Shown: positions 27,953-64,000 of the stretch, piece after piece
Layout of the letters: every line of letters starts with the position of its first letter
How positions within the stretch are numbered: the stretch's first letter is position 1
NCBI GenBank assembly: GCA_965644315.1
Contig: CBFFRQ010000020.1
Coordinates: 1-64,000 of the forward strand
Direction: 5' to 3'
Length of the DNA stretch: 64,000 nt
Source: Caecitellus pseudoparvulus
Taxonomy: Eukaryota; Protista; Bigyra: Bicosoecida
Translations under genes and position numbers: made by a program
Notes under the pieces: model-generated
The model's input: only the letters and a program-made list of their open reading frames with translations
The model's database searches: none
Told to the model about the DNA's origin: nothing

Positions 27953-30900
27953 TCACTCTTCAATGGTTGCTTCAAGTTTCTGCACGACGCTGCGCCGGTT
28001 GGCAGAGTCCCCTCGCCTGCGCCCGAAAATAGAGCTGCGGCCCTTGCCGCCCTTCCGGGCGCTCTTCAGCGCCAGCGCTGCAGCGGAACCTTGTGCATCT
28101 TCCCCAGACATGTCTTGCTGCCCGAATTTGGAGCGGGCGCCAGGACGCACGGCCCTTGAGAAGCGACGCGTCTTCTGGGCCTTGGCCTCTTGCGCCAGCT
28201 CGGCTTGGGCCGTTTGGCGCTGGGTGCCTGCCTTGCGCTTCAGGGCATGCATACGCTGGATAGTGTCTTGCATGTGTGCGTAGTGCTGCTTCAGCTGCTT
28301 CCACAGTGCATCGCTGGGGCGGGAGTTGGGCAGGTCGGCCCCGCTCAGCGTCTTGCGGGAGGCAGCAGCCATCATGAGTGGGTTGTTGTTCATGGCCACA
28401 GACGTCTCCTGCTTCTTTTCCCGCTCGGCACGCACCATGGCATGTTTTGCGCGCTTATCTTTCTTCTTGCCGCCACCCTTGAAGCAGCCCTGGAAGGCGG
28501 CGTCGCCCTTGATCACGGCGTACACCACCAAGGCGATGTACACGAAGGACGCCAGCATGGTGCCCATGACGATGACCAGCAGCGCAATGCGCTGTGCCTC
28601 AAAGAACTCGCCGCCGTTGCCGGCGTCGAAGCGGCCTGACTGGAACATGATGCCGGACACACACACCACGACAGAAACCGAGAGCAAGACGGACTCGACG
28701 ATGTTGTAGTCGGTGATGAACTTCACCCAGCCCTTCTCCAGCCAGAAGGCATCCACGCTCTGGCCCTTGTCCAGCTCCTCCTCCTCCAAGCCGGTGCGCT
28801 TCTTGGTGTTCTTGCGGGCGTCGAAGATTGAGGACTTCTTCAGCAGTCTCTGAATGGCCAGCTCCCGGGAGGACTTCTTCTTCACACCCTCCCAGTATGC
28901 CGCCACAAGCGTTGGCCACTCCATCTTGCCCACGTACGGGGAGTTGATGATGTGCAGGGTGAAAGAGGCGAAGAGCACGACGAGCACCATGGCCAGCTGG
29001 AAGGCTGGGTTGCGCCGGAACATGAGGCCACACAACGCAATGCACAGCTTGCGGGCGATGATGACGAGGTTCCAGTAGTACTTCTCGTAGTGGTAGATGT
29101 AGTACAGGCGCTTGTACATCTTGCGGATGTCGTAGGCTTCCGGGTTTTCACCTCGGTTGTCTCCCTTCTTCATGGCCATGAGCACGATGTCAGATTGGAT
29201 CTTCACGCCGTTGGTCAGCAACACCCGCGTCACGATGGTGGGGTACCCGATGATGTACACGAACACCGCGACGATGGCCCACGGCAGCAGCGTCTCCTGC
29301 ACGCCGCCTGGTAGGCCGCACTCCTCAAATACCACCTCCAGGTACAGGTTACCGTCGTCTGGGTCGGTGGGGTTGCAGTTGAACACATCGAAGGTCGTGC
29401 GGGTCAAGTGCAAGTACAGGAAGTACAGCATCATGAGGGAGGTGGAGATGAGGGTGGGCAGGTGGCGGTTGATGTCCTTCTTGCGGCCCAAGATGCAGCG
29501 CTTGTAAATGACCAGGCTCACGTGGGCCAGCCCGAACAGTGTCAGCGCGGCCAGTGGCAGCGCCATGGTGCCGAACCACTTCATGGGGTACTCCAGATCT
29601 GGCACAGAGCACTCAGGTGCCGTCAGCTCCAGGTTGAAGGAGAAGATGGACAGGAACTGGAACAAGGACAGCAACTCCACTGGCCAAGGCACCTTGGACC
29701 TCGCGAACAGTGCCAGCACCTGGAAGTAGTCCACGATGATGCTGGCCACACCAGTGTGCACCTCCCGCTTGTTCAGGTTGTACGCGACAGCACCCAGCAC
29801 CGTCGCCGCCACCAGGCCACCGACAATGAGCAGCCAAGCATTCTCAGGGCACTCCACGCACTCGCCGCCCAGGCGGTAGTGCCCAGCAGAGCACAGAGCG
29901 CAGCGGATGCCGGTGTACTTGGCAGAGCATTCGTTGGCGCCCGCACAGGCCTCAGGCGGCTCGCAAGGAATGTAGTGAGGGCACACTTCCCGCACTTGCG
30001 GCTCCTGGGTTCCACGGGGGCCACACTCGGGTGCGTTCAGGGTCAAGTTCGTGCGCCACCAGCTTGCCTCAGACCACGGGTCCTCCAGGTTGTTCTCGAA
30101 GCTGCTGCAGTTCGCGCCAAGCTTGCAGCGCATGCAGAACTCGCCCGGCATACCGTAGAAGCCTGGTGTGCAGCGAGTCAGCAACACGTTGCGCTCGCTC
30201 GGCGTGACGCCTTCGATGGTGCCGTTCAGAATCACAGAGATGTTCTGGCTGCCCACACGCACAGGGCTCATGCGGCACTCCAGGAATGGCCCAGCTGGTC
30301 CGAGCTGCCACGAGGATTCTCTGCACGGGATGTCTGACAGCGAGATGTTCACGTCGACACGGGCAGAGCCGAAGTTCTGTCCATACATCTCAAGCAGAGA
30401 TCCGCCCAGGGCATCTGCAGGCTGCGGCTGCACAAACGACACACGAGGCACGTCGTAGTGCATGGTGGAGGCCGCCGGCTGCTGGTCTGCAGACACCAGC
30501 TGAACGGGGATGTTCTCGCCGAAACCAGGAGGCGGACGCACCACAACTTCGTCGTGGTTCCACTGGACAATGCAGGGCCCCGCCACTGAGCGGCAGTCGC
30601 AGAATGCCTCGGATGTCGTCATGCGTGCACCGTACGTGTAGTCTCGCCTGCAGCAGCCTGCGCCGTTGGGTGCGCCACCGAGCCTGCCTGCTGCGCCCTG
30701 GTAAGTCTCGCACGCCCCCGTCACCTCCCCTGTGATGTCGCACTCGGTTGGGCAGAGGGCGCCGTCAGTGGCCAAGCTAGCAGCCGCTGACGTCTGCCGC
30801 AGCGCAGAGCACGTGCGGGTGACGAAGGTGCCGCCAATCTGCACGCCGTACTGCTGGCTGGGGAGGAACAGCTCGTACCGGCTGCCACTTGGGAGGCTGC

Positions 30901-33900
30901 CCAGGTTGGACCCTGAAATGGCCACTGCGGCTGGGCGGCAGCACGTGTCCAAGGTTGTGCCACTCTGCAGCCACTGGAAGCAGCCGTCTGTGGGAACGCT
31001 GGGCACCTCGCTCGGGGGCGTCGTCACTGGTGCTGCGTACGTGAGCGTCAACAACACATTGGCTGGTGCGGAGGCATCTGCCGAAAAGAGTCGGTTGGAG
31101 GGCGGGCCTGTCACCAGCTGCACCGTGAAGGGCCCGCCAGCACCAGGCGGCACAATGAACACCACACGGGTGTGGGACCACTCCAACACAAGCGGATCTG
31201 ATGCCGGGAACTCCTCCTCAAAGCCCGCGCTGGGCAGCGAGAACAGCACACTGCCCGTAGCTGCGAAGTTAGTGCCCAACAGTTCCACCACAGCGGGGCC
31301 TTCCTCAGTGCTGGACGGTGAGAAGGTTGTGCTGCCCCACACAGACGGCCACAGGCTGGCTGCAGCAGCTGCGTATTGGTTGAACATCGCGGTATTGCCT
31401 CGAATGGGACCGGAAGCAACGGCAGACTGCTGCATGGTTGCCCGAGTGTTCATGGGGGGGATGACGCTGCTCCCATCCACAGCAGGCGGCGAGTACGCAA
31501 TGGAGTCAACTCGGGCAGCTGGCAAGGCGGGCGTGTTGCAGTCGCGGGGAACAGATTGGTCCTGCCTGACGTTCGTCAAGCGAACTGCCAAGCAACGCCC
31601 CGCACCTTCCACCGTGTAGCACACGACGCGGGTGGTGGTCCAGTTCGCGGCAGGGCACGCCAGCACATTGCCAGCGACCTCTACACGCGCAAAGTCACGG
31701 GAGACGGCTGCTGTCTCCGGCCAGGCAAACGGGCCGAAGTTTGTCCCTACGATGACCACTTCCTCGCCACCGCGGGTGTTCACCTCGTCCACTTCGGTCC
31801 GCACGGAGGAAGGGCCGGTGTACTTGTACATCCTGAGTGACGTGAGGTGGGGCGGCGCATAGTCCAACTCCACGGAGGGGTTGGGCGCTGACACCTGCCC
31901 GACGACGTCCACGACGATTTGGATGTTGCTGCCCACCCAGTCAGGGGCAAAGAAGGTCAGGTCAGTGTGGCTGCGGCTTTGCACAGACACGACATCGCTC
32001 CAGTATGCGGTTCCGTTCACCAGCGTCGTCGAGAAGTCACTCAGCCTGACGACGGGGTTCAAGCCAAAGTTGCTGCCGCGAATGGTGATGAGGTCACCCG
32101 CAGAGGCACTTTGGCCAGCCGCCTGCGCAGCTGCTTGGGCAGTTGGACTGTCACCAGTGAGCCCCCAGCCCAACACGGTGGGCGCAGGGTAGGTCAGGTT
32201 GCCGATGGTGCCGAGGACAGGCGCCGTGCCGTTGCCATCCAGCACCATGCTGCTTCGAATGACAATGACCTCCACGGTGCCTTCGCCGGGCGGAGCGTCG
32301 CAGACGATCCTTCCAAGCACAACCTGTCCAGAATCCACGGAAATTGTCGAGGACTGTGTCGGCCCAGTGCCATACGGAGCAGGGGAGGCATCAGCACTGC
32401 CGCCGCCATTGCCGCAAGGTGACAGGATGCTGCCACGCCTGAAGTACGTCTTGACTTGGGGAACTGCATCAGAGGCCGGGCCGAGGTTCGTGGCCACGAT
32501 GCTCACCTTGAAGCCACCAGCAGTTGAGAAGCCAGCGAGGGGCGTCACGCTGCGCACGGAGGGGTTATCGTTGGAGAAGAACACGGAGGTGGACGTTTGT
32601 CCCAGCGTGTTCACCCACACTCGCCCTGTGCGCATTCTCAATGCAAAGCGAGCGAAGGTGTGGCTGCGCACGACTGCGCTGCCAGTCAAGTTGCACGCAG
32701 CATTTGCGGCATCCATGTCTGCCCGGCTCACCAGCGCTGACGGGTGAGCAGCAATGCCTGGAAGCCTGCCTTCTGTGTCGTTCGCGGCCAAGAACAGGGA
32801 CACGCTGTCGCGCCCGTTGCCGAAGTTGTAGCCTGACGCTTCGATGATGGTGCATAGCGGGTCAACGTTTCCAAGGCCCAGGTTGGCGATGGCCACTTCG
32901 TCCAACACCGCCAGCGAGTCAACGACGGGCGGGGAGTAGTGGAACACCATGGCGTTGGAGTCAGTGTCGGCCACGCGCACGAACACCTGCACATCACGTC
33001 CCGCACCGGGAGGCGACAGGAAGTCCACCTGCGTGGAAGTCGTCGTGCCCACCTTGGTTGCGGTGGAGAGACCTGTGGTGGTGGAAGCCTTGGGCACTCC
33101 ACGGAACATGACCTGGGGAGGTACCTTCTCGTATCCGAAGTTTGCACCCACAAGGCGGAAACGCACACCCCCCACCGTGGCATTGCCAGTTTCGTCCAAA
33201 GTGTCAATCAGCTCCAAACGGTCAACTCTGGGGACATCGTAGGCGAGGGTCGTTTGGGCGGCACCCGTCACCTGCGATGTCTGCGTGGCAACACGCACGA
33301 CGACGGCGAGGCCGCCGCCGACACCAGGGGCACTCAAGCACGTGATTTGCGAGTGGGGGATGGTAATGGTCAAGTCCGTGCACACAAAGCGCCCAGTGTC
33401 GCTTGACGGGCCGTACGTGATGCCGCCGATGATGCCCGACAAGTCGGTCAGGTTCCCACCCAAGTTCCGGCCGTTCACGATGATGGTGTCGCCTCCACCC
33501 GTGGACAGGGTGCTGACGTTCACGCCTGCTCGCTGCACGTACACTGACGTGACTTCAGGTCGCAGGTACCCGTAGGAGGGTGCCCGGCTGGCCTGCCCGT
33601 CGATGACTGCGGTCCAGCGCAAGTCACCGCCAGCGCCAGAGACAGTCCTGCACTGGATCAGTGTGTGTGCCACCACCACGGAGCAATTGACGGCTGCAAA
33701 TTCAGTGGGGTACGGTTCCCCGCTGAGCCGCCTGGAGCCAGCTCCGCCCGTTTCCTCGTCATCGTCACTGGCGAGGCGGTACGTCACGGAGTCCAGTCGG
33801 GCAGATCCCAGCGGGCCAAAGTTGCTGCCCGCCAGGAACACTTCTTCGTCTCCCGGCGTCGCGCTTGCAGCTCCATCGCCGTAAACCTGACCAAGGATGG

Positions 33901-36900
33901 GTGGGGCGTAGTGCAGCGTGTCCAAGGCCACCTGCCCAGTCCACTGTGTGGAGCACAGGGTCCCCGACGCATCACACACAGTGATGCCAATTTGCACGTC
34001 GTGCTCCCTTCCAGACCCAGGCACTGTTGCACATTCAAGCGTGCCAGCTTGGGGCACACGGCAGTCGTTGGACTCATACCTGTACACTGCATCAGTGGAC
34101 CAGTTGCCCTGGGAAACATGAGCCAGCTCGTACTGAGACACAGATGCGTTGGGTGCAAGCAAGAAGCTGCCGTAACGCATGCGGTACGTGACGGCCAGGG
34201 TTGCCGGCAAGGCAATGGTCGCAGGGCCGAGGTGGCGACCCTGCATGGCGATGACAGTGCCGCCACGGGTCGCGCCGCCCTCCACAGCACCAGCCGCCTC
34301 GTCAATGGGCTTGCTGGTCTGAATGAACTCAGGCGGCACGTACGATGTTGCATCAGCTGATGCTGACACCGCAGGTGTACCGGCAACCGTCAGCCTCCAC
34401 ACGTGCCCTGCGCCAATGCCAGGGACAGACTGGCACAACACACGCGTGTGGCCGCACTCCAGGGCACATCGCGTCGCATCCAGGAAGAATTCAGTGCCAT
34501 TGGGGCCATACGTGGCGGAGATGGCATGGGTGCCGCCCGCGGGCCCAAAGTTTGCCCCTTCAATGGCAACAGTGCTGCTGCCGTCCGTGTCCAGCTGCTG
34601 TTCTGCTGTGCCGCCAGGGAGAGTCGCGAGCGACACAGCGCAGGACAACTCCTCGTCAGTAATCTCCCCCACACGCAGCACCGAGACAGACGGGGGTCTG
34701 TATGAAGACGGCAACAGGCGCGGCGGGCTTGAGATGCCGCCAACACTGACTGTGAAGGTGTGGTCTCGGCCCACACCAGGTACAGTGACACACTGCAGCT
34801 TCGTGTGGGGAACAGTAATGCTACAAGACACCGCAGTGTACAGTGGGGTGTTCCCGGGGATAATGTACGTGACGGTAGGTGCGCCGTCTGCGTCGCTAAC
34901 CACACCCGGCCCGAAGTTCGTGCCCGTCAAGACGAGGGCATCCCCGCCGGTTGTCTCAGCATTCGTGAAGGACGCATCGGCAAGTGTGAGGATGGCGGGC
35001 GCAGCATGCGAGACCAAGTGTGGAGCAGCCGTCGTGAAGTCGGCCGGTTCGGCGAAGTCAGGCAAGCCTGCAGGGGACGTGAAGCGCACCCGCACAGCAA
35101 GGTCCGCACCAACGCCCTCAACAGTGCTGCAGTTCATGAGTGTGTTGCCCAAGTCGCTCGCGTCCTCCAGCACCGCGCAATCCGTCGCAGTGTACTTGGA
35201 GCCGTCAGCGCCACCATACGTCACCATGGGGACTGCGCGAGGCGCTGACGGGTTTTGCTGGTGGAAGGACTTGGTGAAGCCGAAGTTCCTGCCAGTCAGG
35301 AGCAGAGTGCTGCCTCCGGCGGTGGGCAAGGCGTTCGCCGGGCCAGGCGCCGCGGCGCCATCCTGCACCTGCACTCGCGTGACTGTGACATCGTTGATGT
35401 CTGTCAAGTTCACCCGCACGTCGCAGAAAGCCTGCAGGTTGGTTGGGTCGCGCACAAGAATGCTAGCTGTCAATCGCTGGGCATGTTCAAAGTCTGCGCT
35501 GGAGAAGGCCAGCACGACGAGGTTGAACCGTTCAAGGACAGCGTCGTACTTCACGCCGAAGATGTCTCGCCCAGAGCTGTCCTTCGTGTTAGCCACGGCC
35601 ACCAAGGAAAGCTCGCCAATGGTCCGGTTCACTTGGGTGAGGTCCTCGTCCGACACGCTGAGAGCGCCGACCAGCAGCTCCGTCGTTTCGACGCGCTCAG
35701 GAATGGAGAACGGCTGCAGTCCACAGACAGGCGCCTCGTCCACGTCTTGCACATCGACCTGAATCGTCCCTGCCGAGGACAAGCCGCCATCAGAAGCTGT
35801 CACGCTCAGCGTGAAGGTCGGGGAGGGCCCTTCGAAGTTCAAAGCGTTCGGCGCGGCATCTGCGCGCAGCTTCACAAGGTAGTGTGTGAGAGTCCCGCCC
35901 CCCGCCAAAGCAGATGCTGCATCGGAAAATGATGTCGCAGAAGCGACGGAGGTGCCGATGACTTCCAGCTCGAAGACATCGCTCTCTGGCGCAGCGAGCG
36001 TGAGGCTCAGGGGCATCCCATCCTCGTCGGGATCACGCCACGTCAGGTTTGCCAGGACAGAGCCTGGAGGCGTGTTCTCGTCCGGGGTGAGGGAGGCTTG
36101 CAGGCCGGCGTCCGGCACCTCTGGCATATTTGCCACATCCACTACTACCGTGTTGACGACAGTGACGGAGTCCTCTGCATCTGGGGGATGGTCTGTGATG
36201 AACACGTCGAGTATCACCTGAGGGGTGAGCTCGAAGTTAAGCATGGACGAGTTCACTTGCAGCTGCCCAGACTGTGGAGCCATGTCTTGGACATCTAGGA
36301 GGCGCCCACCACGGGGAGTCACATCCCGAACGCGGAAGGTGACATCATCACCGTCCGCGTCGGTGGCGACTAGGAGTGGAGAAATGGCCGCGCCAAGCAA
36401 AGAGTTTTCATCCACGGATCGGGCCACACCAGCATTCGAAAGCACAGGTGGGCGGTTTTGGTTCGAAATGGTGACATTGACTTGCGCGGAAATGGTGAGA
36501 CCTTCACCATCGGCAACCTCCACGACCAGCGTGTGCACCTCAGACGAGGAGAGGTCTGCAAGGTCATTCACGACAACCACTTGTCCAGTAGCATCAACAG
36601 ACAAGTTTGCGCTTGTGGAGCTGATCAAAGTAAAAGTAAGCGTATCTCCCGCGTCTTCATCAACAGCTGCCAGCGGGTCGCCCACTCCGACACCCGCGGT
36701 CGTCAGCTCTGCAACTGTGCGCTGGAACGTCTCAGACGGATCCCATGTCGGGTTGTCATTTTCATCGGCAAGTTCCACGAGGATCCATACAGACCGGGTT
36801 TGGTTGCTGCCAGTGGGGTCCGTTGCAGCAGCTTCCACCCACACGAGTGGCTCCGATACGGGCTGGCCTTCGTAATTCAAGGCGGCAGTATCCAGGATTT

Positions 36901-39900
36901 CCAGCGACCACTCACGCACGGTGACATTGAAATACTCCTCTATCAACACCCCCTGGCCAATGATGGTTGAGTTTGAGTTGACATCAAACGTAACGTTTTG
37001 CTGCACGTACGACGCGTTGACCGTCTCCACGAAAGAGCTTGGCAGAGTCAAGCCCACTGCGCTTACGCCGCGCACGATGCCGTCGTTCGCATTGGTCGCA
37101 GGCAGGGAGAGTTGAACCGCGTCACCTTCATCGTCTGTCGCCTGTAGATACCCAAACACAGTTCCAGCTGGTGTGTGTTCGCTAAGTACGACTCGGTTGC
37201 AAGCAAACTGCTTGCTGCCGCCGAACACTTCGCCATTTTGCGCTGCAGTGTACACTGGCTTGTTGTAGGTGGACCTAGTGTCAAAGTAGCACCTTCTCGC
37301 GTACGGCGAGGAGCCGCTGTTGTGCGTGGATGCATAGTACACAAACCCTCTGCATGTCTGGGAGGCAGCGCAGTCAGCCTGGCATTGTGCTGCGTTTGCA
37401 CGGTCAGACGGGAAGGGCGAGCCAAAGCGCACATCCAGCTCTGATTCAACGCCGGGGGTCGGGAAGCTAACATCAGCGGTGCCAGACAGAGAAAAACCAC
37501 CACTTGGCTCGTATCCCCAACCTGCATGCATGGCCCACGGGGTGTCCCAAGCCGTGAAGGAGGAAGAGTTGCATCTGAACAACGGCCTGTCATTGCGATC
37601 TGTGATGTTAACCTGTACGTTCATGGTATCTTGCAGCGGCTCAGTGTCATCGCCATCGCGAATGCGAAGCACGAGGTCAAACTGCTGCGTGGACTCAAAG
37701 TCGATGACGTCGTTTGCGACAGCGAGCTCTGCGGTGGTCTTGATGGAAGGGATCGTGGAGTTGGCATCGTCGGGATCTGGCACAAGGATGGTTTCCTCCT
37801 TTGCTTCGATTTTGAAGGGGGCACCCAGAGCAGCGCTGCTGCCACCAGCACCAGCCAAAGCTGCGTACTGCGCAGTCGGTCCCGCCACAGAGCCAGGCGA
37901 CACGCGGTTTTGGTTTCCCGAGACAATGATGACTTCAATTCCTTGCTCGTCCAGAGGCAGGGCGGCGACGTCTTGATCGGTGAAATCGATGGCCGTGATG
38001 ACGGTGTCAGGTGGCGTGTTCTCCTGGATAGAGAAGGTGTATGGAGGACTGTCGTCAAGCCACTCTGGTGCCTCATTCACGTTCTGCAACCGAACGGTGA
38101 CGTTCATGACTGTGACTCCGATGGGGAAGCCGTTTCCCCGCCCTCCATCATCAGTCACTTGCACTTCCAGCAGGAAGCTGGTGTCCTCTTCATAATCGAA
38201 AGCTTCATCGCCGGCACTCGACACGGTGATGGCACCGGTGGTCGAGGCCATGTCCAGCCATGCAAGGTACTTTGCAGGGTATGTTGCCAACGCGGCGTAC
38301 GTCAACGTATCGCCGTCTTCGTCTGTTGCAGCTAGAGTGCCAACCGCCGAGCCTTGGGCAGAGTTCTCGATGACAGTCAGGCTCTGCGACGCCGACACGC
38401 TGGGAGGGTCATTGGCATCGAGGACGTGGATGTTGATGAGGGCTGTCGCCTGGAACTCAGTGTCGTTGACCATGGCCAGAAGTGAGAAAGAGTTCAGGGC
38501 CGGGTTTTCGTAGTCAAGGAGGTTGGGCTTCGTCGTCACGAGCTGTGCTGTTGACCGCGTCCCGACGGTGGGAAGGGACTGCACGTCAAACTGATCAACA
38601 GCGTCGGTGATGATGACGGACCATGCCAGGTCGTCACCGTCTTGGTCTGTGCCATTCAGTGGCCAAATGGCCAAAGGTGCTCCGACTATGCCGTTCTCAT
38701 ACACATATGCATCTTGCGGCGACAGCTCCGGCGGGTCATTCTTGTTGATGATGTTGATGCGAACAACCCGGGTCACGTTCAGGGGCGGGTAGCCATCATC
38801 CAGAGCCATGATTGTGACGTTGTACTCTGCCTGCTCCTCAAAATCAGGGGGGTTACGCACCCGGAACTGGCCAGAGCAGGCACCGATGGAGAACGTGTTG
38901 TGGTCGTTGCCTGCCACAATGGAAAACAGCACTAGTTGGCCGTCGTCTTCGTCAGAGCCTTCGATAGGAGTGCCCACCTTTGTGTTCACAGGAGCTTCTT
39001 CAATGATGGACCGCACTGGGTTGTCCTCCAGAACGGGGTGGTCGTTGATGTCCCGCACTTGGAAGTAGGGCAGAGCCAAGGAGCTCAGCCTGCCGTCGCT
39101 GACCTCTACCCCTGCCGCCAGGAAAGCCGTGGACACAGACAGGTCATCAGTGCGATTGCGGTAGAGTTCGCGCAGGTACTCGTAGTTCAAGAACGTCGGG
39201 TCTGCCACATACACCTCCCCAGTGGAAGCATTGACCGCCAGGACGTTTCCGACGTTGCCCGAGATGATCGTGAAAGACAATCCACAGGTTGCCAGATCTG
39301 GGCAGTCTCCGTCTTGGGCATTCAAATCCGCGACCACGGTGCCAAACGGCAAGTTCTCGTCAATCACCGTGAACGGGCCTGAGGCACGGGGAGGCTCTTC
39401 GACATTCAGCAGCTCCACGTTGGCTGTCACGACGTCCACAGCGGAAGCCTGAGATGCCCATGCCTTCATGTGCATGGTTGCCACCACTGCATCGACGCGC
39501 TGGTCCCACCCCCAACCATGGTTGATCCAGACGACACGCTGGGGTGAATGGCTGGAGCCGATGCGCCGTGATGCCGCCCACATGCGGGTGTGGGTCTCGT
39601 TGTAGGCGTACGCAACTCCGCCGTAGTTCACATAACTGTAGTAGCCACACATCTGGGGTGTCGTTCCTTTCATGTCAAAGCGGAAGCCTTGGCCTGCACC
39701 GGTGTTCACTTGCGCAAGCACTTGCACCTGCCCGGGCAATCGGCCCAAGTCATGCCTCACCTCCGCATGGGCGAGGGAGTGTGAGTGCAGATCAAATGGT
39801 GGGTGCTCGTAGCTCGGCGGGTTCACGTCATCATCCGCCCGCCATGCCTGGACACGCAGTGCCACAGTCAGCGTCTCGGATGGCATCGCCTGCCCACCCC

Positions 39901-47923: not shown

Positions 47924-48337
47924 GGTACCAGGCTCGAGGGATCCGAGCAAGCAACAACGAGTGCAACGAGCTGGCAGAAGAGGCTTGAAACGCCGCCTCT
48001 TCGCCGGGCTGCCTGCGCAAGCTGAGAGCGCTCTCGGGCGGCTCAGGCCGTTGGATGCCTTGACAATACAAGCACCTTGATGGACGGCTGATCAGCACCG
48101 ACCTGGTGCGATTGCATGTAAAGCTACTGTGGAACGTGTGAGCTTCTGCACACCACGCACAGCTCCGCCCCCTTCCTCCCCCTGCTACCCCCTTCCCGAA
48201 GCGTCCGGTGCGACTCGAACACCGTCAAACCAAATCGTTTTGCCCTAAAGCGTGTCCTAGCGCACTTCATGGCTCCTGAAGGCCTCACCTGGCTTCCGGT
48301 TGGCACGTGGCGTTCAGGTGCATTTCCGCAGGGAACC
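47924..48337. promoter_or_regulatory. Putative bidirectional promoter between the two giant cadherin genes
   Basis: 414 bp separate the divergent start codons at 47923(-) and 48338(+). Inferred from position only; no motif identified. Confidence 0.5.
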
Positions 48338-54300: not shown

Positions 54301-57300
54301 AGACGGGCAAAAGTACCGACACTATGGAGAGTATGGTGGCATCGTGTACAACTACGATGAGAGCGTCGTGCGCGTGTTTGCGCCAGACGCTCGCCACCAC
54401 GAGTCCCTCAGTCTGAGGGGCCACGCGATTCACATCCCAAGCGGGTATCCGTCTGTGAACAGGCAGACCTCTCGCTTCGCTTCAGTCAGGGTGCAAGCTT
54501 GGACTGGTGAGGTCCGCGAGCGTCCTGACTTTGCTACGAATGAGCAAGACATGACCTTCGTCCGCCACTCAACCATGTACCACGAACAGCCAGTGGCCCT
54601 ACTCGCTCATCGTCCGCCAGCTCGGTTCACGGCAATCGCTTTCATCGACAACTACGGCTCCTCTGTAGGCCGCGCACCGCTTGTTGGCATGCACGGCAAC
54701 TTGGCATACTCCTATTGGAGCGCCTATTCCGGTATCGCTTGGGCGTACAATCGTCAAGGTGTGCGTGCTTGGGGTCCATCTCCAGATTTGACCAGGTCGG
54801 AATGGCGCAGTACGAACCACGTGCCCTCCCGCGCAAGTGATGGGTGGGGCGGTGAAGCAGGGACTTGGTATAAGAGTTACGCGCGCACTCAGTTCACCAC
54901 GTGGGGCTCACCACAGTCAGTGCAAGATTCGACTGCAGTGACAGTGCATGTGTCTGACCTGCAGGAGCCACCTGTGACCATCAACACGAAGTTCTCAATC
55001 GAGGAGGACGTGTCTGAACGCAATGCGTCGCTGGGCTACTGCGTTGGCCAGGTCATTGCAGCAGATGACGACGCCGGAGACGTCTTGTCCTTCTCTATCT
55101 TGAAAGGCAACACCCGAGGCGCGTGGTCTGTGAACTCTACCGCCCACGTCTGTGTCGCCAACCCGTCTGCCATTAACTTTGAGGAGACGCCGTATTTTGT
55201 GCTTGCCGTGTCGGTAGATGACGGCATTTTCAGCAACCTTGCGATCGTGGAAATCGAAGTCTTGAATCGCAATGACCAAGTGCACGTGTATCCGAAGAAC
55301 CTCACAGTGCCTGAGAACGTCCGAGAAAACACAATTCTGCTGGCAGCAGACCCAAGCGACCCGAACGAGAATGTGCCCTCATTCGATGAAGACCTTGACC
55401 AGGCTATCTTCTACTCCATTGTCGGGGGCAATGATGACGGCGCCTTCTCCATCAACGCCTGCTCGGGACAGGTGCGCGTGAATCAGAGTGATCTCGAACT
55501 TTGAGGCGCCAGAACTTCTACAACCTCACCATCCGCGTGGAGGATGACGGCTCTCCCTTCACATGGGACGAATCTTGGACCACTATCCATGTGACCAACC
55601 GCAACGACCCACCAACGTTGCTGCAGTCCACCGTGGTCAGTGGGTGAGGAATGCCCAATGGCAGGGTGATCTGGTTGGGCCTGCTGGATGCTCGATGATG
55701 AAGACAATGATCCGCTGTTCTTCAACAGTCCTGCGACGGCGATCCCCTGAACAACTTCACGGTGCCGCTACCACTCGCCAGCACCCTGTTCATGGGCGGA
55801 CCACGCTATGGCGTGTTCATCTCGAATGACTCCATCAGCTGGGGTGACGGCACCGGCCGCGAGGATACAGGTTTCACGTGTCCCAACGGTTGCGTGAATG
55901 AGACACGCTTTGCGCTGAGTTTCGAGGCGCCTGAGCTACCCACTCTGAGCGGGGCAACGAAGGGCCGCAATCTGCAGATCCGGGTGCAGGACCTCGAAAC
56001 AATCACTGTCAACTTCCCCAACCACGCCACGACACAATTCGTCACCGTGGCTGTGGAGGACCGAAATGACCCCCCCTTCTTCGACGCCATCACACGCTCA
56101 GTCCCGGAAAACTCGCTGACAGGCACTTCGTGCAGCGCCTCCCTCACTGACTGCTCCAACGACAAACCCTGTGTGCGTGATGAAGATGCTGACGACTCCG
56201 GCAGCTTGGCCTTTTCCATGGCCCCCGACTCCGTGGGTCAGGTCCCGTTCAATGTTCTGCCGAGCGGGGTGATCCAGGTTAACTTGGGTGCTTCTCCGAC
56301 CACGTGGCTGGACTACGAGAGCACGAGTGTGTTCACGTTCAACGTCACAGTCACGGACGGGGGAGGTCCAGAGGGGCCTGGCCAGGCTTACAACCGCACT
56401 GAGTCGGTGAGCGTCGCGTTGACCAATGTGGCCGAGCCACCCGAGGTTATGCTCGTCCAGTCTTTTAACGTTAGTGAGTTGGCTTCGCTTGGGACCATCA
56501 TTGGATACCTGAATGCGACTGATCCAGACGAGGGCGACGAAGTCACATATGACATCCGAACCGGGAACACTCAGGGATGGTTTGACGTCGTAGGTGCAGA
56601 TGGAGCCATCACGGTTGTCGAAACGCTGGATTTCGAGACAGCTCCAGTGCAGGAACTGTTTGTGTTTGCTACAGACGGGACGTTGGAAACACCCCAAATC
56701 AACGTGACTGTGACTCTCATTGATGAGAATGACCCCCCTCTCTTCCAGTGCACTCTCGAGGATGTCTTTGATTTCACCGTGGAGGAAGACACGAACGCCG
56801 TGCTGGGCTACGTGAATGGTGCCAATGAGATTAGCTCCGGATTCGAGTCTGCTGTCTACGATCTGCGCTCCGGCATCAACGATTTCTCCTTCCAGGATTG
56901 CCTTGAATCCTGTGCCTCCACGACGGACTTCACTTGCGTGGCAGCGACATACTTTGCTGGAACGGGGCCGAAAGTGTACCCACAAGCCTCCTTCCACGGC
57001 GACTGCTTCGGGCGAACTGCGTTCCAAAACATCAGGGTGACTGATCCCATTGCCCAACGCGGCGCATTCTCTATGTTCAAAGTTCCGCTCTGTGAGGAGG
57101 CGCAGGCGCTTCCGGAGCATCCACCGAAGGGAACTGTACTAGCCAATATTACTGCGGTGGACCTGGACAGTGACACTGCGGTGCTGTCGATCCCACTGGA
57201 GAACAACCCAGGCTGGGCTGTCGAGGTCAATGGAACTGAGGTTGTTGTGAACAACTCTGCCGCGTTTGACTATGAAACGCAGCCTGAGATGTTGCTGCAG

Positions 57301-60300
57301 GTTGCCGTGTTCGATGGCACTTCCTCGGCCTTCACCTGGGTGCGGGCCACGCTGGTGGACGTGAACGAGGCCCCGACATTCGTAGGAGACAACTCAACAT
57401 ACTCCTTCGCTGTCGCTGAACTTGACGGGCCAGGAACGCTCGTTGGGCGACTGTCTGCGACCGATCCTGATGCATCCTATTCGCTGGACTATTCCATCAT
57501 TGGCGGCAACGACAAGAACACTTTCCGGGTGGTCCGCGAAGGGGTGCTCGGGGACACGGCACGCCTCGAATTGAACCGCACCATCCAAAGCAACGAAGCT
57601 GACGTTGATGGAGCTGACTACACGCTTGTCCTTGAAGTGTCAGACGGCGACTTGGCCAATGTGGTGGAGGTGTACGTGAACATCAACGCCACCAACACCG
57701 CCCCCATGCTCAGTGGCGTGGCAACTACCCGTACAATCCCCGAACACTCTGCACCGGGCACTGTCGTGGGTGCGCCCGTCAATGTTACTGATAACGAAGG
57801 TGACCAGGTCACGTTCACAATCATCAGCACCACCCCCACAATTCCTGGTGCAGCAGGCCAGCCGGTGTTTGACTTTGTTGAGACGTCACCTGGCCTGTGG
57901 AACTTGGTCGTCGCACAGGCACCCCCGCGAGGGGCTCTGAATTTCGAGTGCGACCGCACAGATCCTTTGCCAGGCTGTGCTGCAGGTCTTTTCCATACGT
58001 ATAACGTCTCGTTCACCGTGTCTGACTGGGGCACGGGCAACCGCTCCGTGGACGCCTCCTTGACGGTGTCCGTCACTGATGTTGATGACACACCAGAAGC
58101 GCCGTCTACGATGGTTTTCTCCGTGCCTGAACTGTCCAATCTGGGGCGGGGACTGACGGACATGAGCGGTTCGCTGTCCAACCCATCTGCAGGCCTGGGT
58201 GGCTTGCGGGATGTGTATGACGACGACAAGGATCCCTTGACCTTTACTCTCAGTGGGCCTGACTCGGCGGCCTTTGCCGTGGCCGCCGGGAATGGTGACT
58301 TGGTGGAGAGCTCTGGGAACATCAGCGACCCGTCCTTCCTGAACCAGTACCCGCTTGGACAAACGCCTGACCTGACCGTGGCTGCTGAGCTTGACTTCGA
58401 AGTCAAGTCCCTGTACACATTCACCTTGTCAGTGTCAGACGGGGCGACCACTTTGAACGTCGCAGTGACGGTGAACGTTACAGACGTGCTGGAAGCACCT
58501 GTTGTGGACTCTGGCTTGGCTGACCCCGCGACCTTCCTGGCGACTGTGCCTGAGAACTCTCCTCAAGGCACTCTGGCGGGCATGATCACAGCAAGCGACC
58601 CAGACGGAGACTATCTGTACTACGTCATCACTGGGGTCAGCTTCCTGTTCCAGGCCGGCTGCCCAGCTGGGTCTGAGTGCCAGGAGGAGGAATCCGCTGG
58701 GCAGTTCCTGGAGACTTTCTACACTGAGCCGGTGGCAGTGAATGACACGTTTGGGCCGCACGATGCCCAAAACGCCAGTCTCTTCCTCCGCGCGCCCCAA
58801 CCAGGGGTGGGCACCAGTGTTCTGGACTATGAAAACCGCCTGTTCTACCGAGTCAGCATCGAAGTTGCCGACAGGCCTCTTGGCGCTCCCGGGCGCCTCA
58901 GCTCCATGGCGTACCTGAACGTCACAGTGTTGGACGTGAACGACATCGCCATCGACGCTGTGCGCATGACCCGAAGCAATGGTGCGGGTGGGTTTGTTCC
59001 AACAGATGGATTGCGAACAGTGGGAGGGCTCGACTTCATCGAAGTGCTTGGGCGGGGCATTCGGCATGAGAAGCCTGGCCCCGTGCCACCAGTCATCTCC
59101 CTGGAGTACGGCTGCGAAGATGAAGTTGCCGTGACACCCACATCCCCTGGCGATGATACCATTAACACCACTTGTGCATACACGGCCACAGGGTGTGTCA
59201 TGGACTCTGTCGTGGACATTCGCTGCGCGGCAGTGCCAGGGTCTGGGGCGGGTCACCGCATCCGCATCACCGTGGATGGCCAGGTGCGCCACAGCACGCC
59301 CTCCATCCACTCGCCCACGACACCCCAGCTCGTGTCCTACCTGCCTCCCCGAGTCACTGACGTTTCTGCCCCCTCTCCACTGGCCACAGCTGGGGGGCAG
59401 TCCATCGTGGTTACCGGCTCCAACTTTGGGCCATCAGGGACGGAGCCAGTCTCTGCGACGTATGCCAACGGCATTCTCATGTTCGCCGCCACGTCTTGCT
59501 CCGTGGACAGCCACACGCAGATAACTTGCCAGAGCGTGGCTGGAGTGGGCACTGCCTTCCTCACGGCTGTCTCTGTGGATGGCCAAGCGTCAACCTCCGC
59601 CGCGTCGTTGCGAGCAGAGGCGGCAGGGAACCCCACATTCGCTGCGACGCTGCAGGCGATGCAGCTGAACTATGCCGCGCCAGTGGTCTCAGGTGTCACT
59701 GCGGCAAGCCAGCAGCACACCCAGCCAACATCTGGCAGCGGTGCGGTGCGCAACATCGCGCTGACTGGCAATTCCTTCGGGCCAGGCTCGGCAGCGCTGA
59801 TCGCAACTGCCATGGACCCAGGAGCCACGTTGCCCCAAGTGCAGGCCTACGCCTCCTTTGTGGGGGAGCTGAGAAACGCGAGGTTTTGGCTGCGATCCTC
59901 CGATTGCCAGCATGCTTCGGACAACCTAGTCGAGTGCAGCACTCCGCCTGGGGCGGGCAGCAACTTCACCTGGCGCTTGACGACGGGCGAGCAGACATCT
60001 GCGTGGTCCAGCGCATCTCAGCAGACGGGGTACGCTGCGCCTGAAATCACCTCAGTCTTCGGCGAGGGCGTTGAAGAGGGGCCCACAGCGGGTGGCTCGC
60101 GTGTCTCGGTGCAAGGCGTGAACCTGGGCCCTGCCTTCTTGCTGTCCAAGCTGGACGAGAGTGGCTCCGAGCTCCCGGCCTTTTCGCCCATCGCAGCGGT
60201 GGACTCACTCCTGTACACTTCTCCCTTCTCAGTACTTGCCAACCACACGTACGCAGCCTCTAACTGTGCAGTTCGCACAGCGCATTCCCTGATTGACTGT

Positions 60301-63300
60301 GTCACGGCTCCAGGCACCGGTGAAGGGCATCGATGGACGCTCACTGTCGGGGACCAGGCATCTGCCCAGTTCATTCCTCCTGAGAATACTTCATACGCCA
60401 AGCCCTTCATCACGGAGACACTTGGCGCTGCTGGAACCGGTGCCGAGACGCGCGGTGGGCAGACTGTCGTGTTGAGGGGGAGCAACTTGGGCCAGTTCCA
60501 AGTGGCCATTCAACGTGTGGTGCTGCAGGGCTACGACTACGGTGACAAGTCTGGGCCACTGAGAGCGTACGACTTCACGGCCAACTGCGTGCTATCAGTT
60601 GCCCACGTGGAGCTGACGTGCACGACGCCAGAAGGTGCCGGCTCCTTCATGAGCTTCGACGTCGTCGTGGATGGTCTGCAGTCAGAGCCCGCCTCCACCC
60701 GGTATTTGCAGCCTCACCTGGATGCCGTGCAGACTGCTGATCCTGCGGCAGGGGAAGCGGCTCGCAACGTGACTCCGAGCACCCTGCACACACGTGGTGG
60801 GGATGTTTTCTCGGTGCAGGGCTTGAACTTCGCAGAGAACATCACGTACGTCACCTCCATGACCTACTCTGGGTCCTACAGTGTGCCGGCCGTCTCAGGT
60901 GGAGGCACTCGCCAAGTGCTCAAGGAGGTCGTCAGCAGCTGCAACATGACTGCAGCGCACTACGAACTGCAGTGTGTGACACTGCCAGGCGTAGGGGCGG
61001 GTCTCCAGGTAAACATGCTCGTGGCGGGACAAGGCAGAGACTCTGAGAGCATTGACATGCCTCCAGTCTCGTACGCGCCCCCTGACATGCTAACCATGCT
61101 GCCTTCCTTTGCTGCCAGCCAGGTTTCTTCGCGTGACTTCCGCCTCCGCGCTTCCTCGGCGACCACTAGAAATGTCGCCACGCTTCCGACTCTCGCAGCC
61201 AGTCAGCGGTTGACTGTGCGCCTCGTTGGGACAAATTTTGGGTCTGCTGCGGAAGGTCTCACCGTCCATGCGCAAGTGTCCAACTACGAAGTCGGCTCAC
61301 CTGCCGCTGTGAATGTGCCTTTCACTGAAGGAAATTGTTTTGAAGCCTTCGACCGCTTGACTGGGACAGGTGGTACGCAGTGGTACAGCAGCGGCTTCCC
61401 GCTGGCTGACCTGGAGCAGGCATACGTCACGGCCGTTGGGTCCCCTCTCGCAGTGGATACAGCAGGCCAGTCGGTGCCGCAGGAGGAGCAGTCCAGGTCG
61501 GCTCCCTACTGCATCGACTTCATCCCGCCGGTTGAGAACCATGAATCTCTACGACTGACGGTGGAAGTTGGAGGACAGACATCGGCATCTGAACTTGAGC
61601 TATCCTTTGCCCGCCCACACGTCGGCGACGTCATCGTGGCGGTGTCTGAAGAGTCTGAGATCGGACCCTTTGTCGCCAACAGGTCTCGATCAGCAGCCTT
61701 TGTTCCCGTTACTCCAGCACTGGATGTGCAAGAGGAGCTCCAGGGCTGGCGCATGTTGAAGCTGGAAGGCCTGGACTTCGGCACAAGCGGTGCTGTTGTT
61801 GTGCAGTACGTGGACCTGGTCGGCAACGGCACAGGCTCGGCTGATGCTGAAATCAACAGCACGCTGTACTCGACACATGGCATCTTGACGAAGTACGTGG
61901 AAGAAATGCGTGCTGCAGGCCACTGCTGTGCTACTGCTGCGGCTGACCTCGTCGCAAGTTGCCTGGAGGAGTGCTTGCGAGTGGACTTGACCAGTGTCCT
62001 GGGTGGTGGCTTCTATGACCGCAACTTGGGCGCAGCGCCACGCAGTGTGCGCAGGGAAACCACTCTGTGCCGCTCTGATGTTGACATCGTTGCAGACTCC
62101 ATCGTGGACCCAGCTTTCTACTTCAGGCCTGAGCTGCAGTTCCACTACCGCCACGACAGTATCCGGTGCCTGCTGCCGCCTGCGGGTGGCCGGGAGATCA
62201 CCGCTGCGGTGGGTGTGCTTGTGGCTGGAGGGCGGTTCCACGCACACTCCAACGTCATGGACTTCTCACAGCTCAGCCCCCGCATCCTGGAAGTGCGCAG
62301 CACTGCGACATTCACAGCAGGGGATGCATACCGCACCACGGGTGGACAGACCCTGCGATTATTGGTGGAGTATGCCGGCACTGTGGACCGCAATGTCACC
62401 CGAATTGAAGTGGGTGAAGAGGGCGTTCCTCCAGGTGAGCAGCGCATGCCCAACACCTTGTGCCCGATTGACTGGTCAGACTCCCAAGCTTTCCTAGAGC
62501 TGGACGACAATGGCGACCCCTGTGGCAGCAGCTGCATTCGATCTCGGGAGTTGGCTGTGCTTACCTGCTTGATGCCCCCAGGTGAGGGTACACAGGTGCC
62601 CATCCGTGTGTTCCGCGGTGACCGCGCTTCAGACAACGCCGAGTTTGTGACATTCTTGCCGCCCACTGTGGATTCCATCATCCCATTCGCTGGCAGGCGC
62701 TTGCAGGCTGGGCTGCCCGCCTTTGGCACTGAGGGCGGGCAGCTTGCTTGGCTGCAAGGGTACAACCTGGGCATCTTGGACCGCGCTGTGAACTTCACTT
62801 TCGCGTCACCGTCCATGCCACTGGCTGGGTACACCGATACGACTCCCCAGACGAACTTGAGCGCGGGGGTGCAGCTTGTGCCGCGCGGGCCTGGCCTGCA
62901 ACCGTGGGAGCGAGTGCTCATTTCCATTCCAGCCAATGGTGTCGGGCAAGATCACCACGTGTGTGTGACGGTCGCCGGCCAGGCTGCATGCTCGCCAACA
63001 GGCGTCTTTTCGTACGCTGCGCCGGAAGTCACGCGCACCGTGAACTTTGCCTCCATCAGCACCCGGGGCTCCAATGGCAAGCTTTGGATCATCGGCAGCA
63101 ACTTTGGGCCCGCCTTCATCCCAGGCGTGACTTCATTTTCCCTGCCTGGAGTCAACTACGAGCTGCACGAGGCGGATTGGAACCACACACACATCGCGTT
63201 GACCATCCTTCCCTCGAACGGCGGCCTGCGCATGGACATGTCATTCACAGTGGAGGGGCAGACGTGGCGGTCTGCCGATGTGGGGGGCATCCCTCCCAGC

Positions 63301-64000
63301 GGCCCGCCCGTTGTGGGTGACCTCACCCTCGTCAACTTTGCCCAGCCAGCGGTGAACCAGAGCACGACGGACCCCCTTGTGAACATTCCCACACGGGGGG
63401 GCATGAATGTGACCATCCGGGGCACGAACTTCGGCTTGGCGCCGTACGTGGAGCTTGGAGGGGTGCGCACGACACCTGTGGAGTCCGATCACGAATTCCT
63501 TACGTTTGTGGTGCCCGAGTCTGTTGGCTCTTACGATGTGGTTGTGTTCGCAAACAACCAGCCCATCAGCACCCCGTTGCGCCTGGAGTACGCCGCTCCC
63601 TCGCTGTCCTCCATCAGGGTGCTGCGAGGTTGCCAGCAGCGCTGTGGCGACATTGTCATCGGTGGGCAGGAGAGCACGGGCCTGTACACGACGCCTTGCG
63701 AAGAGGACAGCGTCTTTGGCGGCACCGCAAACGTCGAACCGTACAGCGTGTGGACCAACCGTGTCACTGCGGATACTCCTGAGTGGGACAGAGTGCGCCG
63801 CTGTGCACAGCCGGACCGAGTGGAACTGCGGGGCGCGAACTTCGGCTCCCCCACTGATGGAGCACACGTTGTCTTCAATGGCCAGCGCATCACTGCTCGT
63901 TGCGACAGCATCGACACGCCTGGCTCGCAGTTCAAGCCCCTGGTTCCTTGCCTCATGGACGTGCTTCCGTCCGAGGAGCACGACCTCGTGAAGATCCGCG
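48338..64000 (+). CDS. Giant cadherin/lectin/IPT surface protein, paralogue B (3' end beyond window; apparent frameshifts at ~55495-55740)
   Basis: Signal peptide MRLASRLFLLLCGAVSLLSSQA; introns 48507-48576 and 48649-48794. The ORF runs to 55504. After an indel patch, frame 1 reads open from 55711; the ORF track shows no terminated ORF in that frame, consistent with no stop before 64000. Module order matches paralogue A: LamG, CGDG..ACDDGN repeat, ILEI-like, DSGW repeats, 11 cadherin repeats, PAN, then GxNFGP IPT repeats. Confidence 0.85.
55495..55740 (+). other. Cluster of ~7 single-base indels disrupting cadherin repeats 3-4 of paralogue B (probable sequencing/assembly error)
   Basis: Removing single extra bases restores canonical cadherin text. 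GATCTC[g]AACTTTGAG[g]CGCCAGAACTTCTAC gives DLNFERQNFY. GATGCT[c]GATGATGAAGACAATGATCCGCTGTTCTTC[a]ACAGTCCTG[c]GACGGC gives DADDEDNDPLFFTVLDG. Confidence 0.75.

Follow-up and report, generated by a model that had tools for sequence, protein, structure and literature searches.

The first 64,000 nucleotides of contig CBFFRQ010000020.1 of the bicosoecid Caecitellus pseudoparvulus (assembly GCA_965644315.1, 30.6 Mb in 215 contigs) constitute the window analysed here, and the contig is referred to as C20. The window carries two giant genes, A and B, which are transcribed away from each other. The best overall explanation for them is that they are anciently diverged paralogues of one type of giant adhesion receptor that have been kept as a divergent pair, a reading to which we assign a probability of about 0.6. 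Its main supports are a module order common to both proteins, phylogenies in which A-type and B-type genes show the same branching, and the recurrence of the head-to-head arrangement in a relative and in further copies within the genome.

Gene models and common module order

Spliced RNA contigs define the 5′ introns of both genes and thereby place the start codons at 47923 (A) and 48338 (B). The initial annotation had described two giant signal-peptide genes starting 414 bp apart on opposite strands, and this holds, like nearly every other detail of that description. Each protein has a hydrophobic, signal-peptide-like N-terminus, followed by a LamG domain that is interrupted by introns. The gene models are as follows.

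27953-47923, minus strand: gene A, ~6,577 amino acids, four exons (47923-47761, 47688-47645, 47569-47498 and 47407-27953), stop codon at 27953-27955
47689-47760, 47570-47644 and 47408-47497, minus strand: introns of A, removed in a spliced RNA contig of metatranscriptome X11 (record 9)
47924-48337, no strand: spacer from ATG to ATG, 414 bp
48338 onward, plus strand: gene B, three exons (48338-48505, 48576-48648 and 48795 onward), stop codon at C20:66892-66894
48506-48575 and 48649-48794, plus strand: introns of B, removed in X11 RNA contigs, the first also in X14

All five introns have GT and AG ends on the coding strand in the RNA contigs, and confirmed introns at the locus measure 70-146 nt. 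Gene A corresponds to a minus-strand open reading frame (ORF) of 6,563 codons, from 47644 to 27953, the 5′ end of which (47408-47644) is partly intron that is read through in frame. Gene B has plus-strand open frames at 48599-55501 and from 55711 onward, and it extends 2.9 kb past the end of the window. The RNA contigs reach 48116 on the A side and 48238 on the B side, so the gap between the two mRNAs is at most 121 bp (48117-48237), and spliced contigs of both mRNAs were found in one and the same metatranscriptome. Divergent transcription across so small a gap fits a compact bidirectional promoter. These RNA contigs come from environmental strains that are 95-99% identical to the window; they are assignable neither to the C20 locus nor to a second genomic copy on contig C68 (described below) because some variants are shared with C68.

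The two proteins, of ~6,000 to 6,600 residues, are strongly diverged (~26% identical overall) yet colinear, as had been claimed: BLASTP aligns them in colinear segments at 24-32% identity, the two longest with E values of 2e-74 and 9e-70. All database searches were run with single exons or ORF pieces, and the cadherin, DSGW and TIG repeats were mapped by Pfam scans and by hidden Markov models (HMMs) trained on the family. The order common to A and B begins with the signal peptide, LamG, a DUF4215 Cys repeat and DUF7495. It continues with a first cadherin repeat (EC1) split by three DSGW domains, EC2-EC6, a PAN or PAN-like insert and EC7-EC11, and it ends with an IPT/TIG array, a Cys-rich neck resembling DUF7630 and Ephrin-receptor modules, a domain of nine transmembrane helices (9-TM) and a basic tail. 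The modules map as listed.

46793-47374, minus strand: A, C-terminal part of the first LamG (N-terminal part in exons 1-3) and DUF4215; Laminin_G_3 36.6 bits, DUF4215 24.9 bits (sub-threshold)
41735-44065, minus strand: A, second LamG_3, F5/8 type C-like and ILEI-like modules, then DUF7495 (Pfam)
39455-40837, minus strand: A, N-terminal two thirds of EC1 and three tandem DSGW domains (exon-4 residues 2191-2651)
35363-39385, minus strand: A, EC2-EC6, PAN domain (37214-37399) and EC7-EC11 (Pfam and HMMs)
30224-35389, minus strand: A, IPT/TIG array of at least 12 repeats
28460-29971, minus strand: A, DUF7630 Cys-rich module and 9-TM domain (hydropathy and AlphaFold2)
27956-28459, minus strand: A, basic cytoplasmic tail with an NPLM motif (comparison of family tails)
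53405-54907, plus strand: B, N-terminal part of EC1 and three DSGW domains (family HMMs)
55007-58953, plus strand: B, EC2-EC11 with a PAN-like Cys insert at ~56788-57096 (Pfam and HMMs)
59335-64000, plus strand: B, IPT/TIG array, at least 8 repeats detected
C20:64918-66390, plus strand, outside the window: B, Cys-rich module and 9-TM domain (hydropathy)
C20:66391-66891, plus strand: B, cytoplasmic tail with an NPML motif (comparison of family tails)

The N-terminal LamG/DUF4215 stretch of A aligns with B, and DUF7495 is common to both (50.1 bits in B). About 700 residues of A, comprising the second LamG_3, the F5/8-C-like and the ILEI-like modules, have no counterpart in B. The family HMMs count 11 cadherin repeats in each protein, and Pfam Cadherin (PF00028) scores of 98-128 bits place both in the cadherin superfamily. 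The calcium motifs xEN, DxD, LDxE and DxNDxP are kept in all repeats but EC8, which in A and B alike is the sole repeat lacking [LF][DN][FY]E. Exactly three DSGW units of ~120 residues each follow the N-terminal two thirds of EC1 in either protein, and the C-terminal part of EC1 resumes after the insert, as is seen directly in B′, the B-type gene on contig C195. Scores of 99-103 bits for Pfam TIG (PF01833), in tandem repeats, place both among the IPT/TIG-bearing receptors. The 11 repeats, the three DSGW domains within EC1, the aberrant EC8 and the IPT/TIG arrays had all been anticipated in the initial annotation. Its PAN domain at the start of EC7 stands for A, where PAN_1 matches between EC6 and EC7 (22.4 bits against a cut-off of 21.4), but in B the homologous Cys-patterned insert at this site gave no Pfam PAN match.

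Conservation of the pair in relatives and within the genome

Retention of the divergent arrangement in relatives had been proposed as a test, and the arrangement is found in one metagenome relative. On L011, a JGI metagenome sequence taken from a 61-kb contig with 56% G+C, an A-type gene (4,068 residues compared, 45% amino acid identity) stands head to head with a B-type gene (42% over 2,277 residues). A third version of the pair, also head to head, occupies the 21-kb contig C195 of the same assembly. Its A′ is 56-59% identical to A in amino acids over the stretches compared, and the nucleotide identity of C195 to C20 is 65-69%, reaching 74% across a single 1-kb part of B. From ATG to ATG the genes are separated by 414 bp in the window, 433 bp on C195 and 428 or 464 bp on L011.

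In a tree of the region from the split EC1 to EC6, the A-type and B-type genes form two clades, both fully supported, and the inner topology is ((window, C195), L011) in each. The A/B duplication is therefore older than the split of these lineages, at least three in number, and the genes have diverged in step, which upholds the ancient inverted duplication originally suggested. In the strict sense each gene has nearer relatives in the same-type copies on C68 and C195 than in its partner, an outcome that the initial annotation had listed as counting against its reading.

The copy on C68 comprises the whole pair. C68:861518-900102 (38.6 kb) matches the window from 28158 to 64000 and continues to C20:66747 at 94.5-97.1% identity; the block ends within ~200 bp of both stop codons, both of its ORFs are open, and its flanks are unrelated to those on C20. 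With dS values of 0.07-0.19 and dN/dS of 0.08-0.21 between the copies, both are under purifying selection. A tract of 6,262 bp (C20 41486-47748) is perfectly identical to C68 amid 2-4% divergence elsewhere, reflecting either recent gene conversion or assembly collapse.

The genes around the locus also differ among relatives. On C20 it exactly fills the gap between CFAP91 and PTPA.

25504-27816 of the window and C20:67609-71672: flanking genes CFAP91, PTPA and LYAR

In two related contigs, L034, which shares its sample with L011, and L035, an ENA contig, CFAP91 and PTPA are ~1 kb apart with no giant genes between them. CFAP91, whose presence marks the organism as a flagellate, is single-copy in the present genome; its relatives come from metagenomes only, at 65-67% identity, and the nearest named match is from a chytrid (29%). 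Identity is 90% between the CFAP91 genes of L034 and L035 and 77% between the A-type genes of L011 and the metagenome protein P0001, a pattern suggesting that L034 and L035 represent a pair of sister species in which the giant genes occupy another site in the genome. The 38.6-kb copy on C68 and the short CFAP91–PTPA gap in two relatives together indicate a pair that has apparently been inherited, moved and copied as a unit.

An assembly artefact (haplotigs, chimeric contigs or contamination) could in principle lie behind both the multiplicity and the pair. The identical 6,262-bp tract would suit such an origin, as would a patch of 13 single-base insertions in B (considered below) and contig C195, a 21-kb fragment with one end 92.5% identical to C20 and the rest at 65-69%, the 3′ halves of whose genes are absent from the assembly. 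Independent sightings of the pair, however, come from Logan contigs of further DNA and RNA runs and from the JGI metagenome contig. The C20 and C68 copies, moreover, have unrelated, unique flanks beside a single-copy CFAP91, which rules out C68 as a haplotig of C20, and they differ by the dS values given above at a dN/dS well below 1. We therefore consider an artefact highly improbable.

The unusual end of C195 was also compared directly. Gene B at 56925-57313 is 92.5% identical to C195:1-388, the contig end, and over the same interval C20 and C68 differ by up to 36% per 100 nt. The end of C195 is either a gene-conversion mosaic between copies of the pair or a chimeric contig end.

Membrane domain, DSGW domain and known relatives

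Both proteins have about nine transmembrane helices by hydropathy. For A, which the initial annotation had ending in nine helices, an AlphaFold2 model agrees, with nine membrane-length helices at a mean predicted local distance difference test (pLDDT) score of 88.3 and a predicted template modelling score (pTM) of 0.87. For B, the recovery of the 3′ end that had been recommended as a check yielded the corresponding domain beyond the window. An extracellular Cys-bearing hairpin and inner loops rich in Lys and Arg indicate an extracellular N-terminus and an intracellular C-terminus. In an exhaustive search at E <= 0.001, the membrane family comprises 3,851 cluster representatives, in carrier proteins of ~320 to 7,800 amino acids. 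The assembly itself holds at least 58 matches to the 9-TM domain, nearly all in open frames that exceed 1,000 codons and the longest in one of 8,657. As most of these genes have frames of 2,000-8,657 codons, they take up a very large share of a 30-Mb genome.

A distantly related family is PF06011 ("TRP"), which includes the fission-yeast Pkd2, a stretch-activated, calcium-permeable putative channel (PMC9727806). PF06011 matches 15 of 49 family members at E <= 0.01 (best E 9.3e-8), the match spanning the central helices at profile positions ~190-345, and DUF7630 matches 38 of the 49. Neighbours in the ESM Atlas by features and shape fall in clusters that carry the labels PF06011, Ephrin_rec_like or DUF7630 and that come from green algae, haptophytes, sponges, cnidarians, ciliates and euglenozoans. 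On such similarity the 9-TM domain is a distant relative of PF06011, not a member by Pfam's rule, and the Pkd2 link is a lead to its possible function, not a demonstration. Other searches returned little. VIA-align gave at best a Z score of 10.5 over 101 residues of a helical repeat, which corresponds to helical-bundle background; a profile search of PDB sequences with the 9-TM region retrieved only the Ephrin-receptor Cys-rich part (E 0.02). No piece of A or B had a Pfam match to a seven-helix (7-TM) G protein-coupled receptor (GPCR) or to GAIN/GPS, and in the fold search no GPCR exceeded the helical-bundle background for the 9-TM domain.

After the last helix, typically 30-80 residues downstream, 89 of 133 family tails carry NP[LMIFV][LMIFV], compared with none of 133 shuffled tails. 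The motif is reminiscent of the NPxY/F motifs that bind adaptors.

The DSGW units were modelled separately.

39455-40600, minus strand: A, DSGW units (fold model)
53792-54907, plus strand: B, DSGW units (fold model)

AlphaFold2 predicts a beta-sandwich (pLDDT 84), whose best fold match, and sole clear counterpart among solved structures, is the C-terminal domain of Pseudomonas aeruginosa pseudaminidase (3h6j residues 329-438; also 2w38). Against 3h6j the Z score is 10.3, with a root-mean-square deviation of 3.1 Å and 21% identity over 107 aligned residues. The next match scores 5.3, and after pseudaminidase the matches are phage tail-fibre tips and H-type lectins, at Z ~5. The pseudaminidase domain mediates trimerisation. 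Because of this, and because DSGW occurs as three tandem copies, the modelled domains could form a pseudo-trimer within one chain. Triple DSGW sets are also present in the metagenome proteins P0010, P0026 and P0230; among the proteins fetched, the domain was seen only in these and P0001, all unnamed metagenome entries, and in no named protein.

Proteins that combine cadherin and TIG repeats with a 9-TM domain are common in marine metagenomes, and the named relatives found with this membrane domain are all from stramenopiles: Triparma laevis, T. strigata, a Bolidomonas transcriptome and five Cafeteria roenbergensis "Cadherin domain-containing proteins". The Cafeteria and Triparma proteins (for example FNF31_07613, FNF28_07293, FNF29_05030 and TL16_g04907) share with A and B the Cadherin, TIG, Cys-rich and 9-TM parts. 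Their membrane domains are ~35-40% identical to that of A, but at 2,800-5,200 amino acids they are shorter. The family of Nonagonal cadherins is said to have been described from stramenopiles by Fletcher, van West and Gachon in 2016 (Gene 593:64). As cited in later papers (PMC7409359, PMC11603286), these proteins have cadherin repeats and a nine-pass C-terminal membrane region, and an oomycete subfamily is described in a citing paper as tri-modular. A and B likewise have nine passes C-terminal to extracellular cadherin repeats. They differ in their 11 repeats, the EC1 split by DSGW, the lectin-like modules, the TIG arrays (at least 8 to 12 repeats), a size above 6,000 amino acids and the conserved divergent pair. 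Likened by architecture, A and B fit this stramenopile kind as a much larger, paired variant. Cadherin, IPT, LamG and lectin genes go up when Cafeteria cells are starved (PMC7852580).

Comparisons outside the stramenopiles are looser. Fungal Flc proteins and fission-yeast Pkd2, both in PF06011, resemble A and B in the weak but recurrent membrane match, the multi-pass topology and a large extracellular N-terminus. In A and B, however, the match is below the cut-off, the ectodomain consists of thousands of residues of adhesion modules, and no Pfam match to the fungal-type N-terminal domain of PF06011 proteins was found. The analogy to animal Flamingo/CELSR drawn in the initial annotation survives as architecture, a long cadherin ectodomain and a multi-pass membrane domain on one polypeptide, but not for the membrane part, which has nine helices of an unrelated family distantly akin to PF06011 instead of a 7-TM GPCR; the likeness is at most convergent. 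Polycystin-1, polycystin-2 and fibrocystin (PKHD1) also join giant adhesive ectodomains with IPT/TIG and lectin modules to a channel-type membrane partner, and polycystins set a precedent for a heteromeric receptor-channel. A and B differ in that each carries both ectodomain and membrane domain, and the likeness to PKD1 and PKD2 is one of architecture. As an analogy, a polycystin-like adhesion receptor built on a membrane domain distantly related to PF06011 is a better comparison than Flamingo.

Possible function and competing readings

The modules suggest how a receptor of this type might work. The N-terminal ectodomain, presumably secreted, comprises LamG, discoidin, PAN and lectin-like DSGW modules, 11 cadherin repeats of the calcium type and a long IPT/TIG stalk, and the Cys-rich neck joins it to the nine-helix membrane domain and the basic cytoplasmic tail. 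In a calcium-dependent way, such ectodomains may adhere to or recognise surfaces that bear glycans, whether prey, substrate or other cells. A signal could then pass through the membrane domain, with the NPx[F/M/L] motif of the tail perhaps taking part, and a shared promoter would keep the two subunit types in step.

Whether the two proteins are also obligate subunits of one heteromeric receptor or receptor-channel, whose stoichiometry a bidirectional promoter fixes, is a further step. It would account for mRNAs that start at most 121 bp apart in the same samples, for co-inheritance, co-duplication and movement as a unit, and for the presence of a B-type neighbour at every A-type locus with readable upstream DNA (window, C68, C195 and L011). 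This sample of loci is small, however, and limited to contigs of sufficient length, many family members are single genes, and a sister relationship between the two membrane domains is not demonstrable; we hold this reading to be unlikely. A still more specific version, in which a pull on the ectodomains by prey or substrate opens a 9-TM pore or switch, the three DSGW domains form a pseudo-trimeric glycan-binding head and the promoter fixes the ratio of A to B, strikes us as decidedly doubtful. If true, it would describe a protist counterpart of the polycystin complex on a membrane fold that has no solved structure.

At the other extreme, the pair may be a neutral relic of a local inverted duplication. 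The two receptors would then act independently, perhaps as homo-oligomers with their own ligands, and their adjacency would reflect low rearrangement and block copying. Most of the at least 58 family matches in the genome are unpaired, local duplicates occur in several orientations, the spacer has no conserved promoter motif, and ectodomains only ~26% identical are what different specificities would produce. The relic explanation sits poorly, on the other hand, with the persistence of the pair at 42-45% amino acid identity and nearly constant spacing, with a local gene neighbourhood that differs between this genome and two relatives, with the congruence of the A and B trees, and with purifying selection on both members in both genomic copies. 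We judge it possible, if rather unlikely, and retain as the preferred reading that A and B are anciently diverged paralogues kept as a divergent pair.

Several observations speak against that preferred reading. Head-to-head genes are common in this compact genome, as the initial annotation had itself cautioned for the window, and local duplicates of the family are also arranged tail to tail (C89) and in tandem (C8). A second diverged head-to-head 9-TM pair, at C52:60346-83263, has long ORFs 452 bp apart (3,715 and 3,774 codons) that are 24-34% identical and share the same 9-TM domain; the family HMMs detected no cadherin or TIG repeats in it. Since local family duplicates occur in all orientations, orientation alone is weak evidence. 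The shared promoter that had been proposed holds as regards the close mRNA ends in one metatranscriptome but not as regards a conserved element, for no 8-mer is common to the intergenic regions of the window, C195 and L011 (three 7-mers are, where 1.3 are expected). The expression evidence consists of assembled contigs from two to three environmental metatranscriptomes and gives presence and splicing, not correlation. The assignment of L011 and L034 to one organism is drawn from their shared sample and parallel identities. In the tree of the membrane domains, the sisterhood of A and B is neither supported nor rejected (p-AU 0.109). PF06011 scores are 17-18 bits for A and 13-18 bits for B, below the gathering cut-off of 28.5, and Foldseek found no solved fold for the 9-TM domain at E <= 0.001; because the fold has no solved counterpart, a channel-like reading rests on distant sequence similarity. 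Finally, gene B is frame-broken in the C20 assembly copy.

The break lies in a short patch.

55490-55790, plus strand: frame-loss patch in the C20 copy of B, 24 differences from C68, among them 13 single-nucleotide insertions and no deletions

The C68 copy of B reads uninterrupted over the long last exon, for 6,066 codons (882001-900198), and outside the patch the C20 copy of B is open as well, its dN/dS against C68 being 0.08-0.21. An intron at the frame change near 55.5 kb was considered and ruled out, as C68 reads straight through and the difference amounts to the 13 single-base insertions. Since several paralogous copies of the region exist, a faulty consensus is the most likely origin of the patch, and a real lesion in this copy is the less likely alternative.

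Heterotrophic marine flagellates are major bacterivores, and to our knowledge little has been established about the way in which they recognise prey or surfaces and keep hold of them. With thousands of metagenome representatives and at least 58 matches in a 30-Mb genome, the giant cadherin–IPT receptors of the 9-TM family are a strong candidate for the surface-sensing apparatus still to be accounted for. A head-to-head pair of paralogues kept across lineages, and copied and moved together, provides a testable case of possible subunit co-regulation, and the distant link to PF06011 and Pkd2 suggests a mechanosensory or calcium-signalling output. A structure of the membrane module would annotate a eukaryote-wide family that now has none.

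Further observations concern the genome at large. Sequence words from the locus occur, as DNA and RNA, in marine metagenomes and metatranscriptomes, and the G+C content of the window is 57-76% per 2-kb stretch. The tail-to-tail family members C89:786458 (plus strand) and C89:789354 (minus strand) are nearly identical. A few genes upstream of the pair, an ORF at 12280-14760 combines AMP-binding and phosphopantetheine-attachment domains, resembling nonribosomal peptide synthetases or acyl-activating enzymes. A divergent match to small-subunit rRNA on C213 scores 451 bits and perhaps reflects an organellar or a foreign sequence, and a tandem rDNA array at C81:462535-506238 has 18S copies spaced ~8.45 kb apart.

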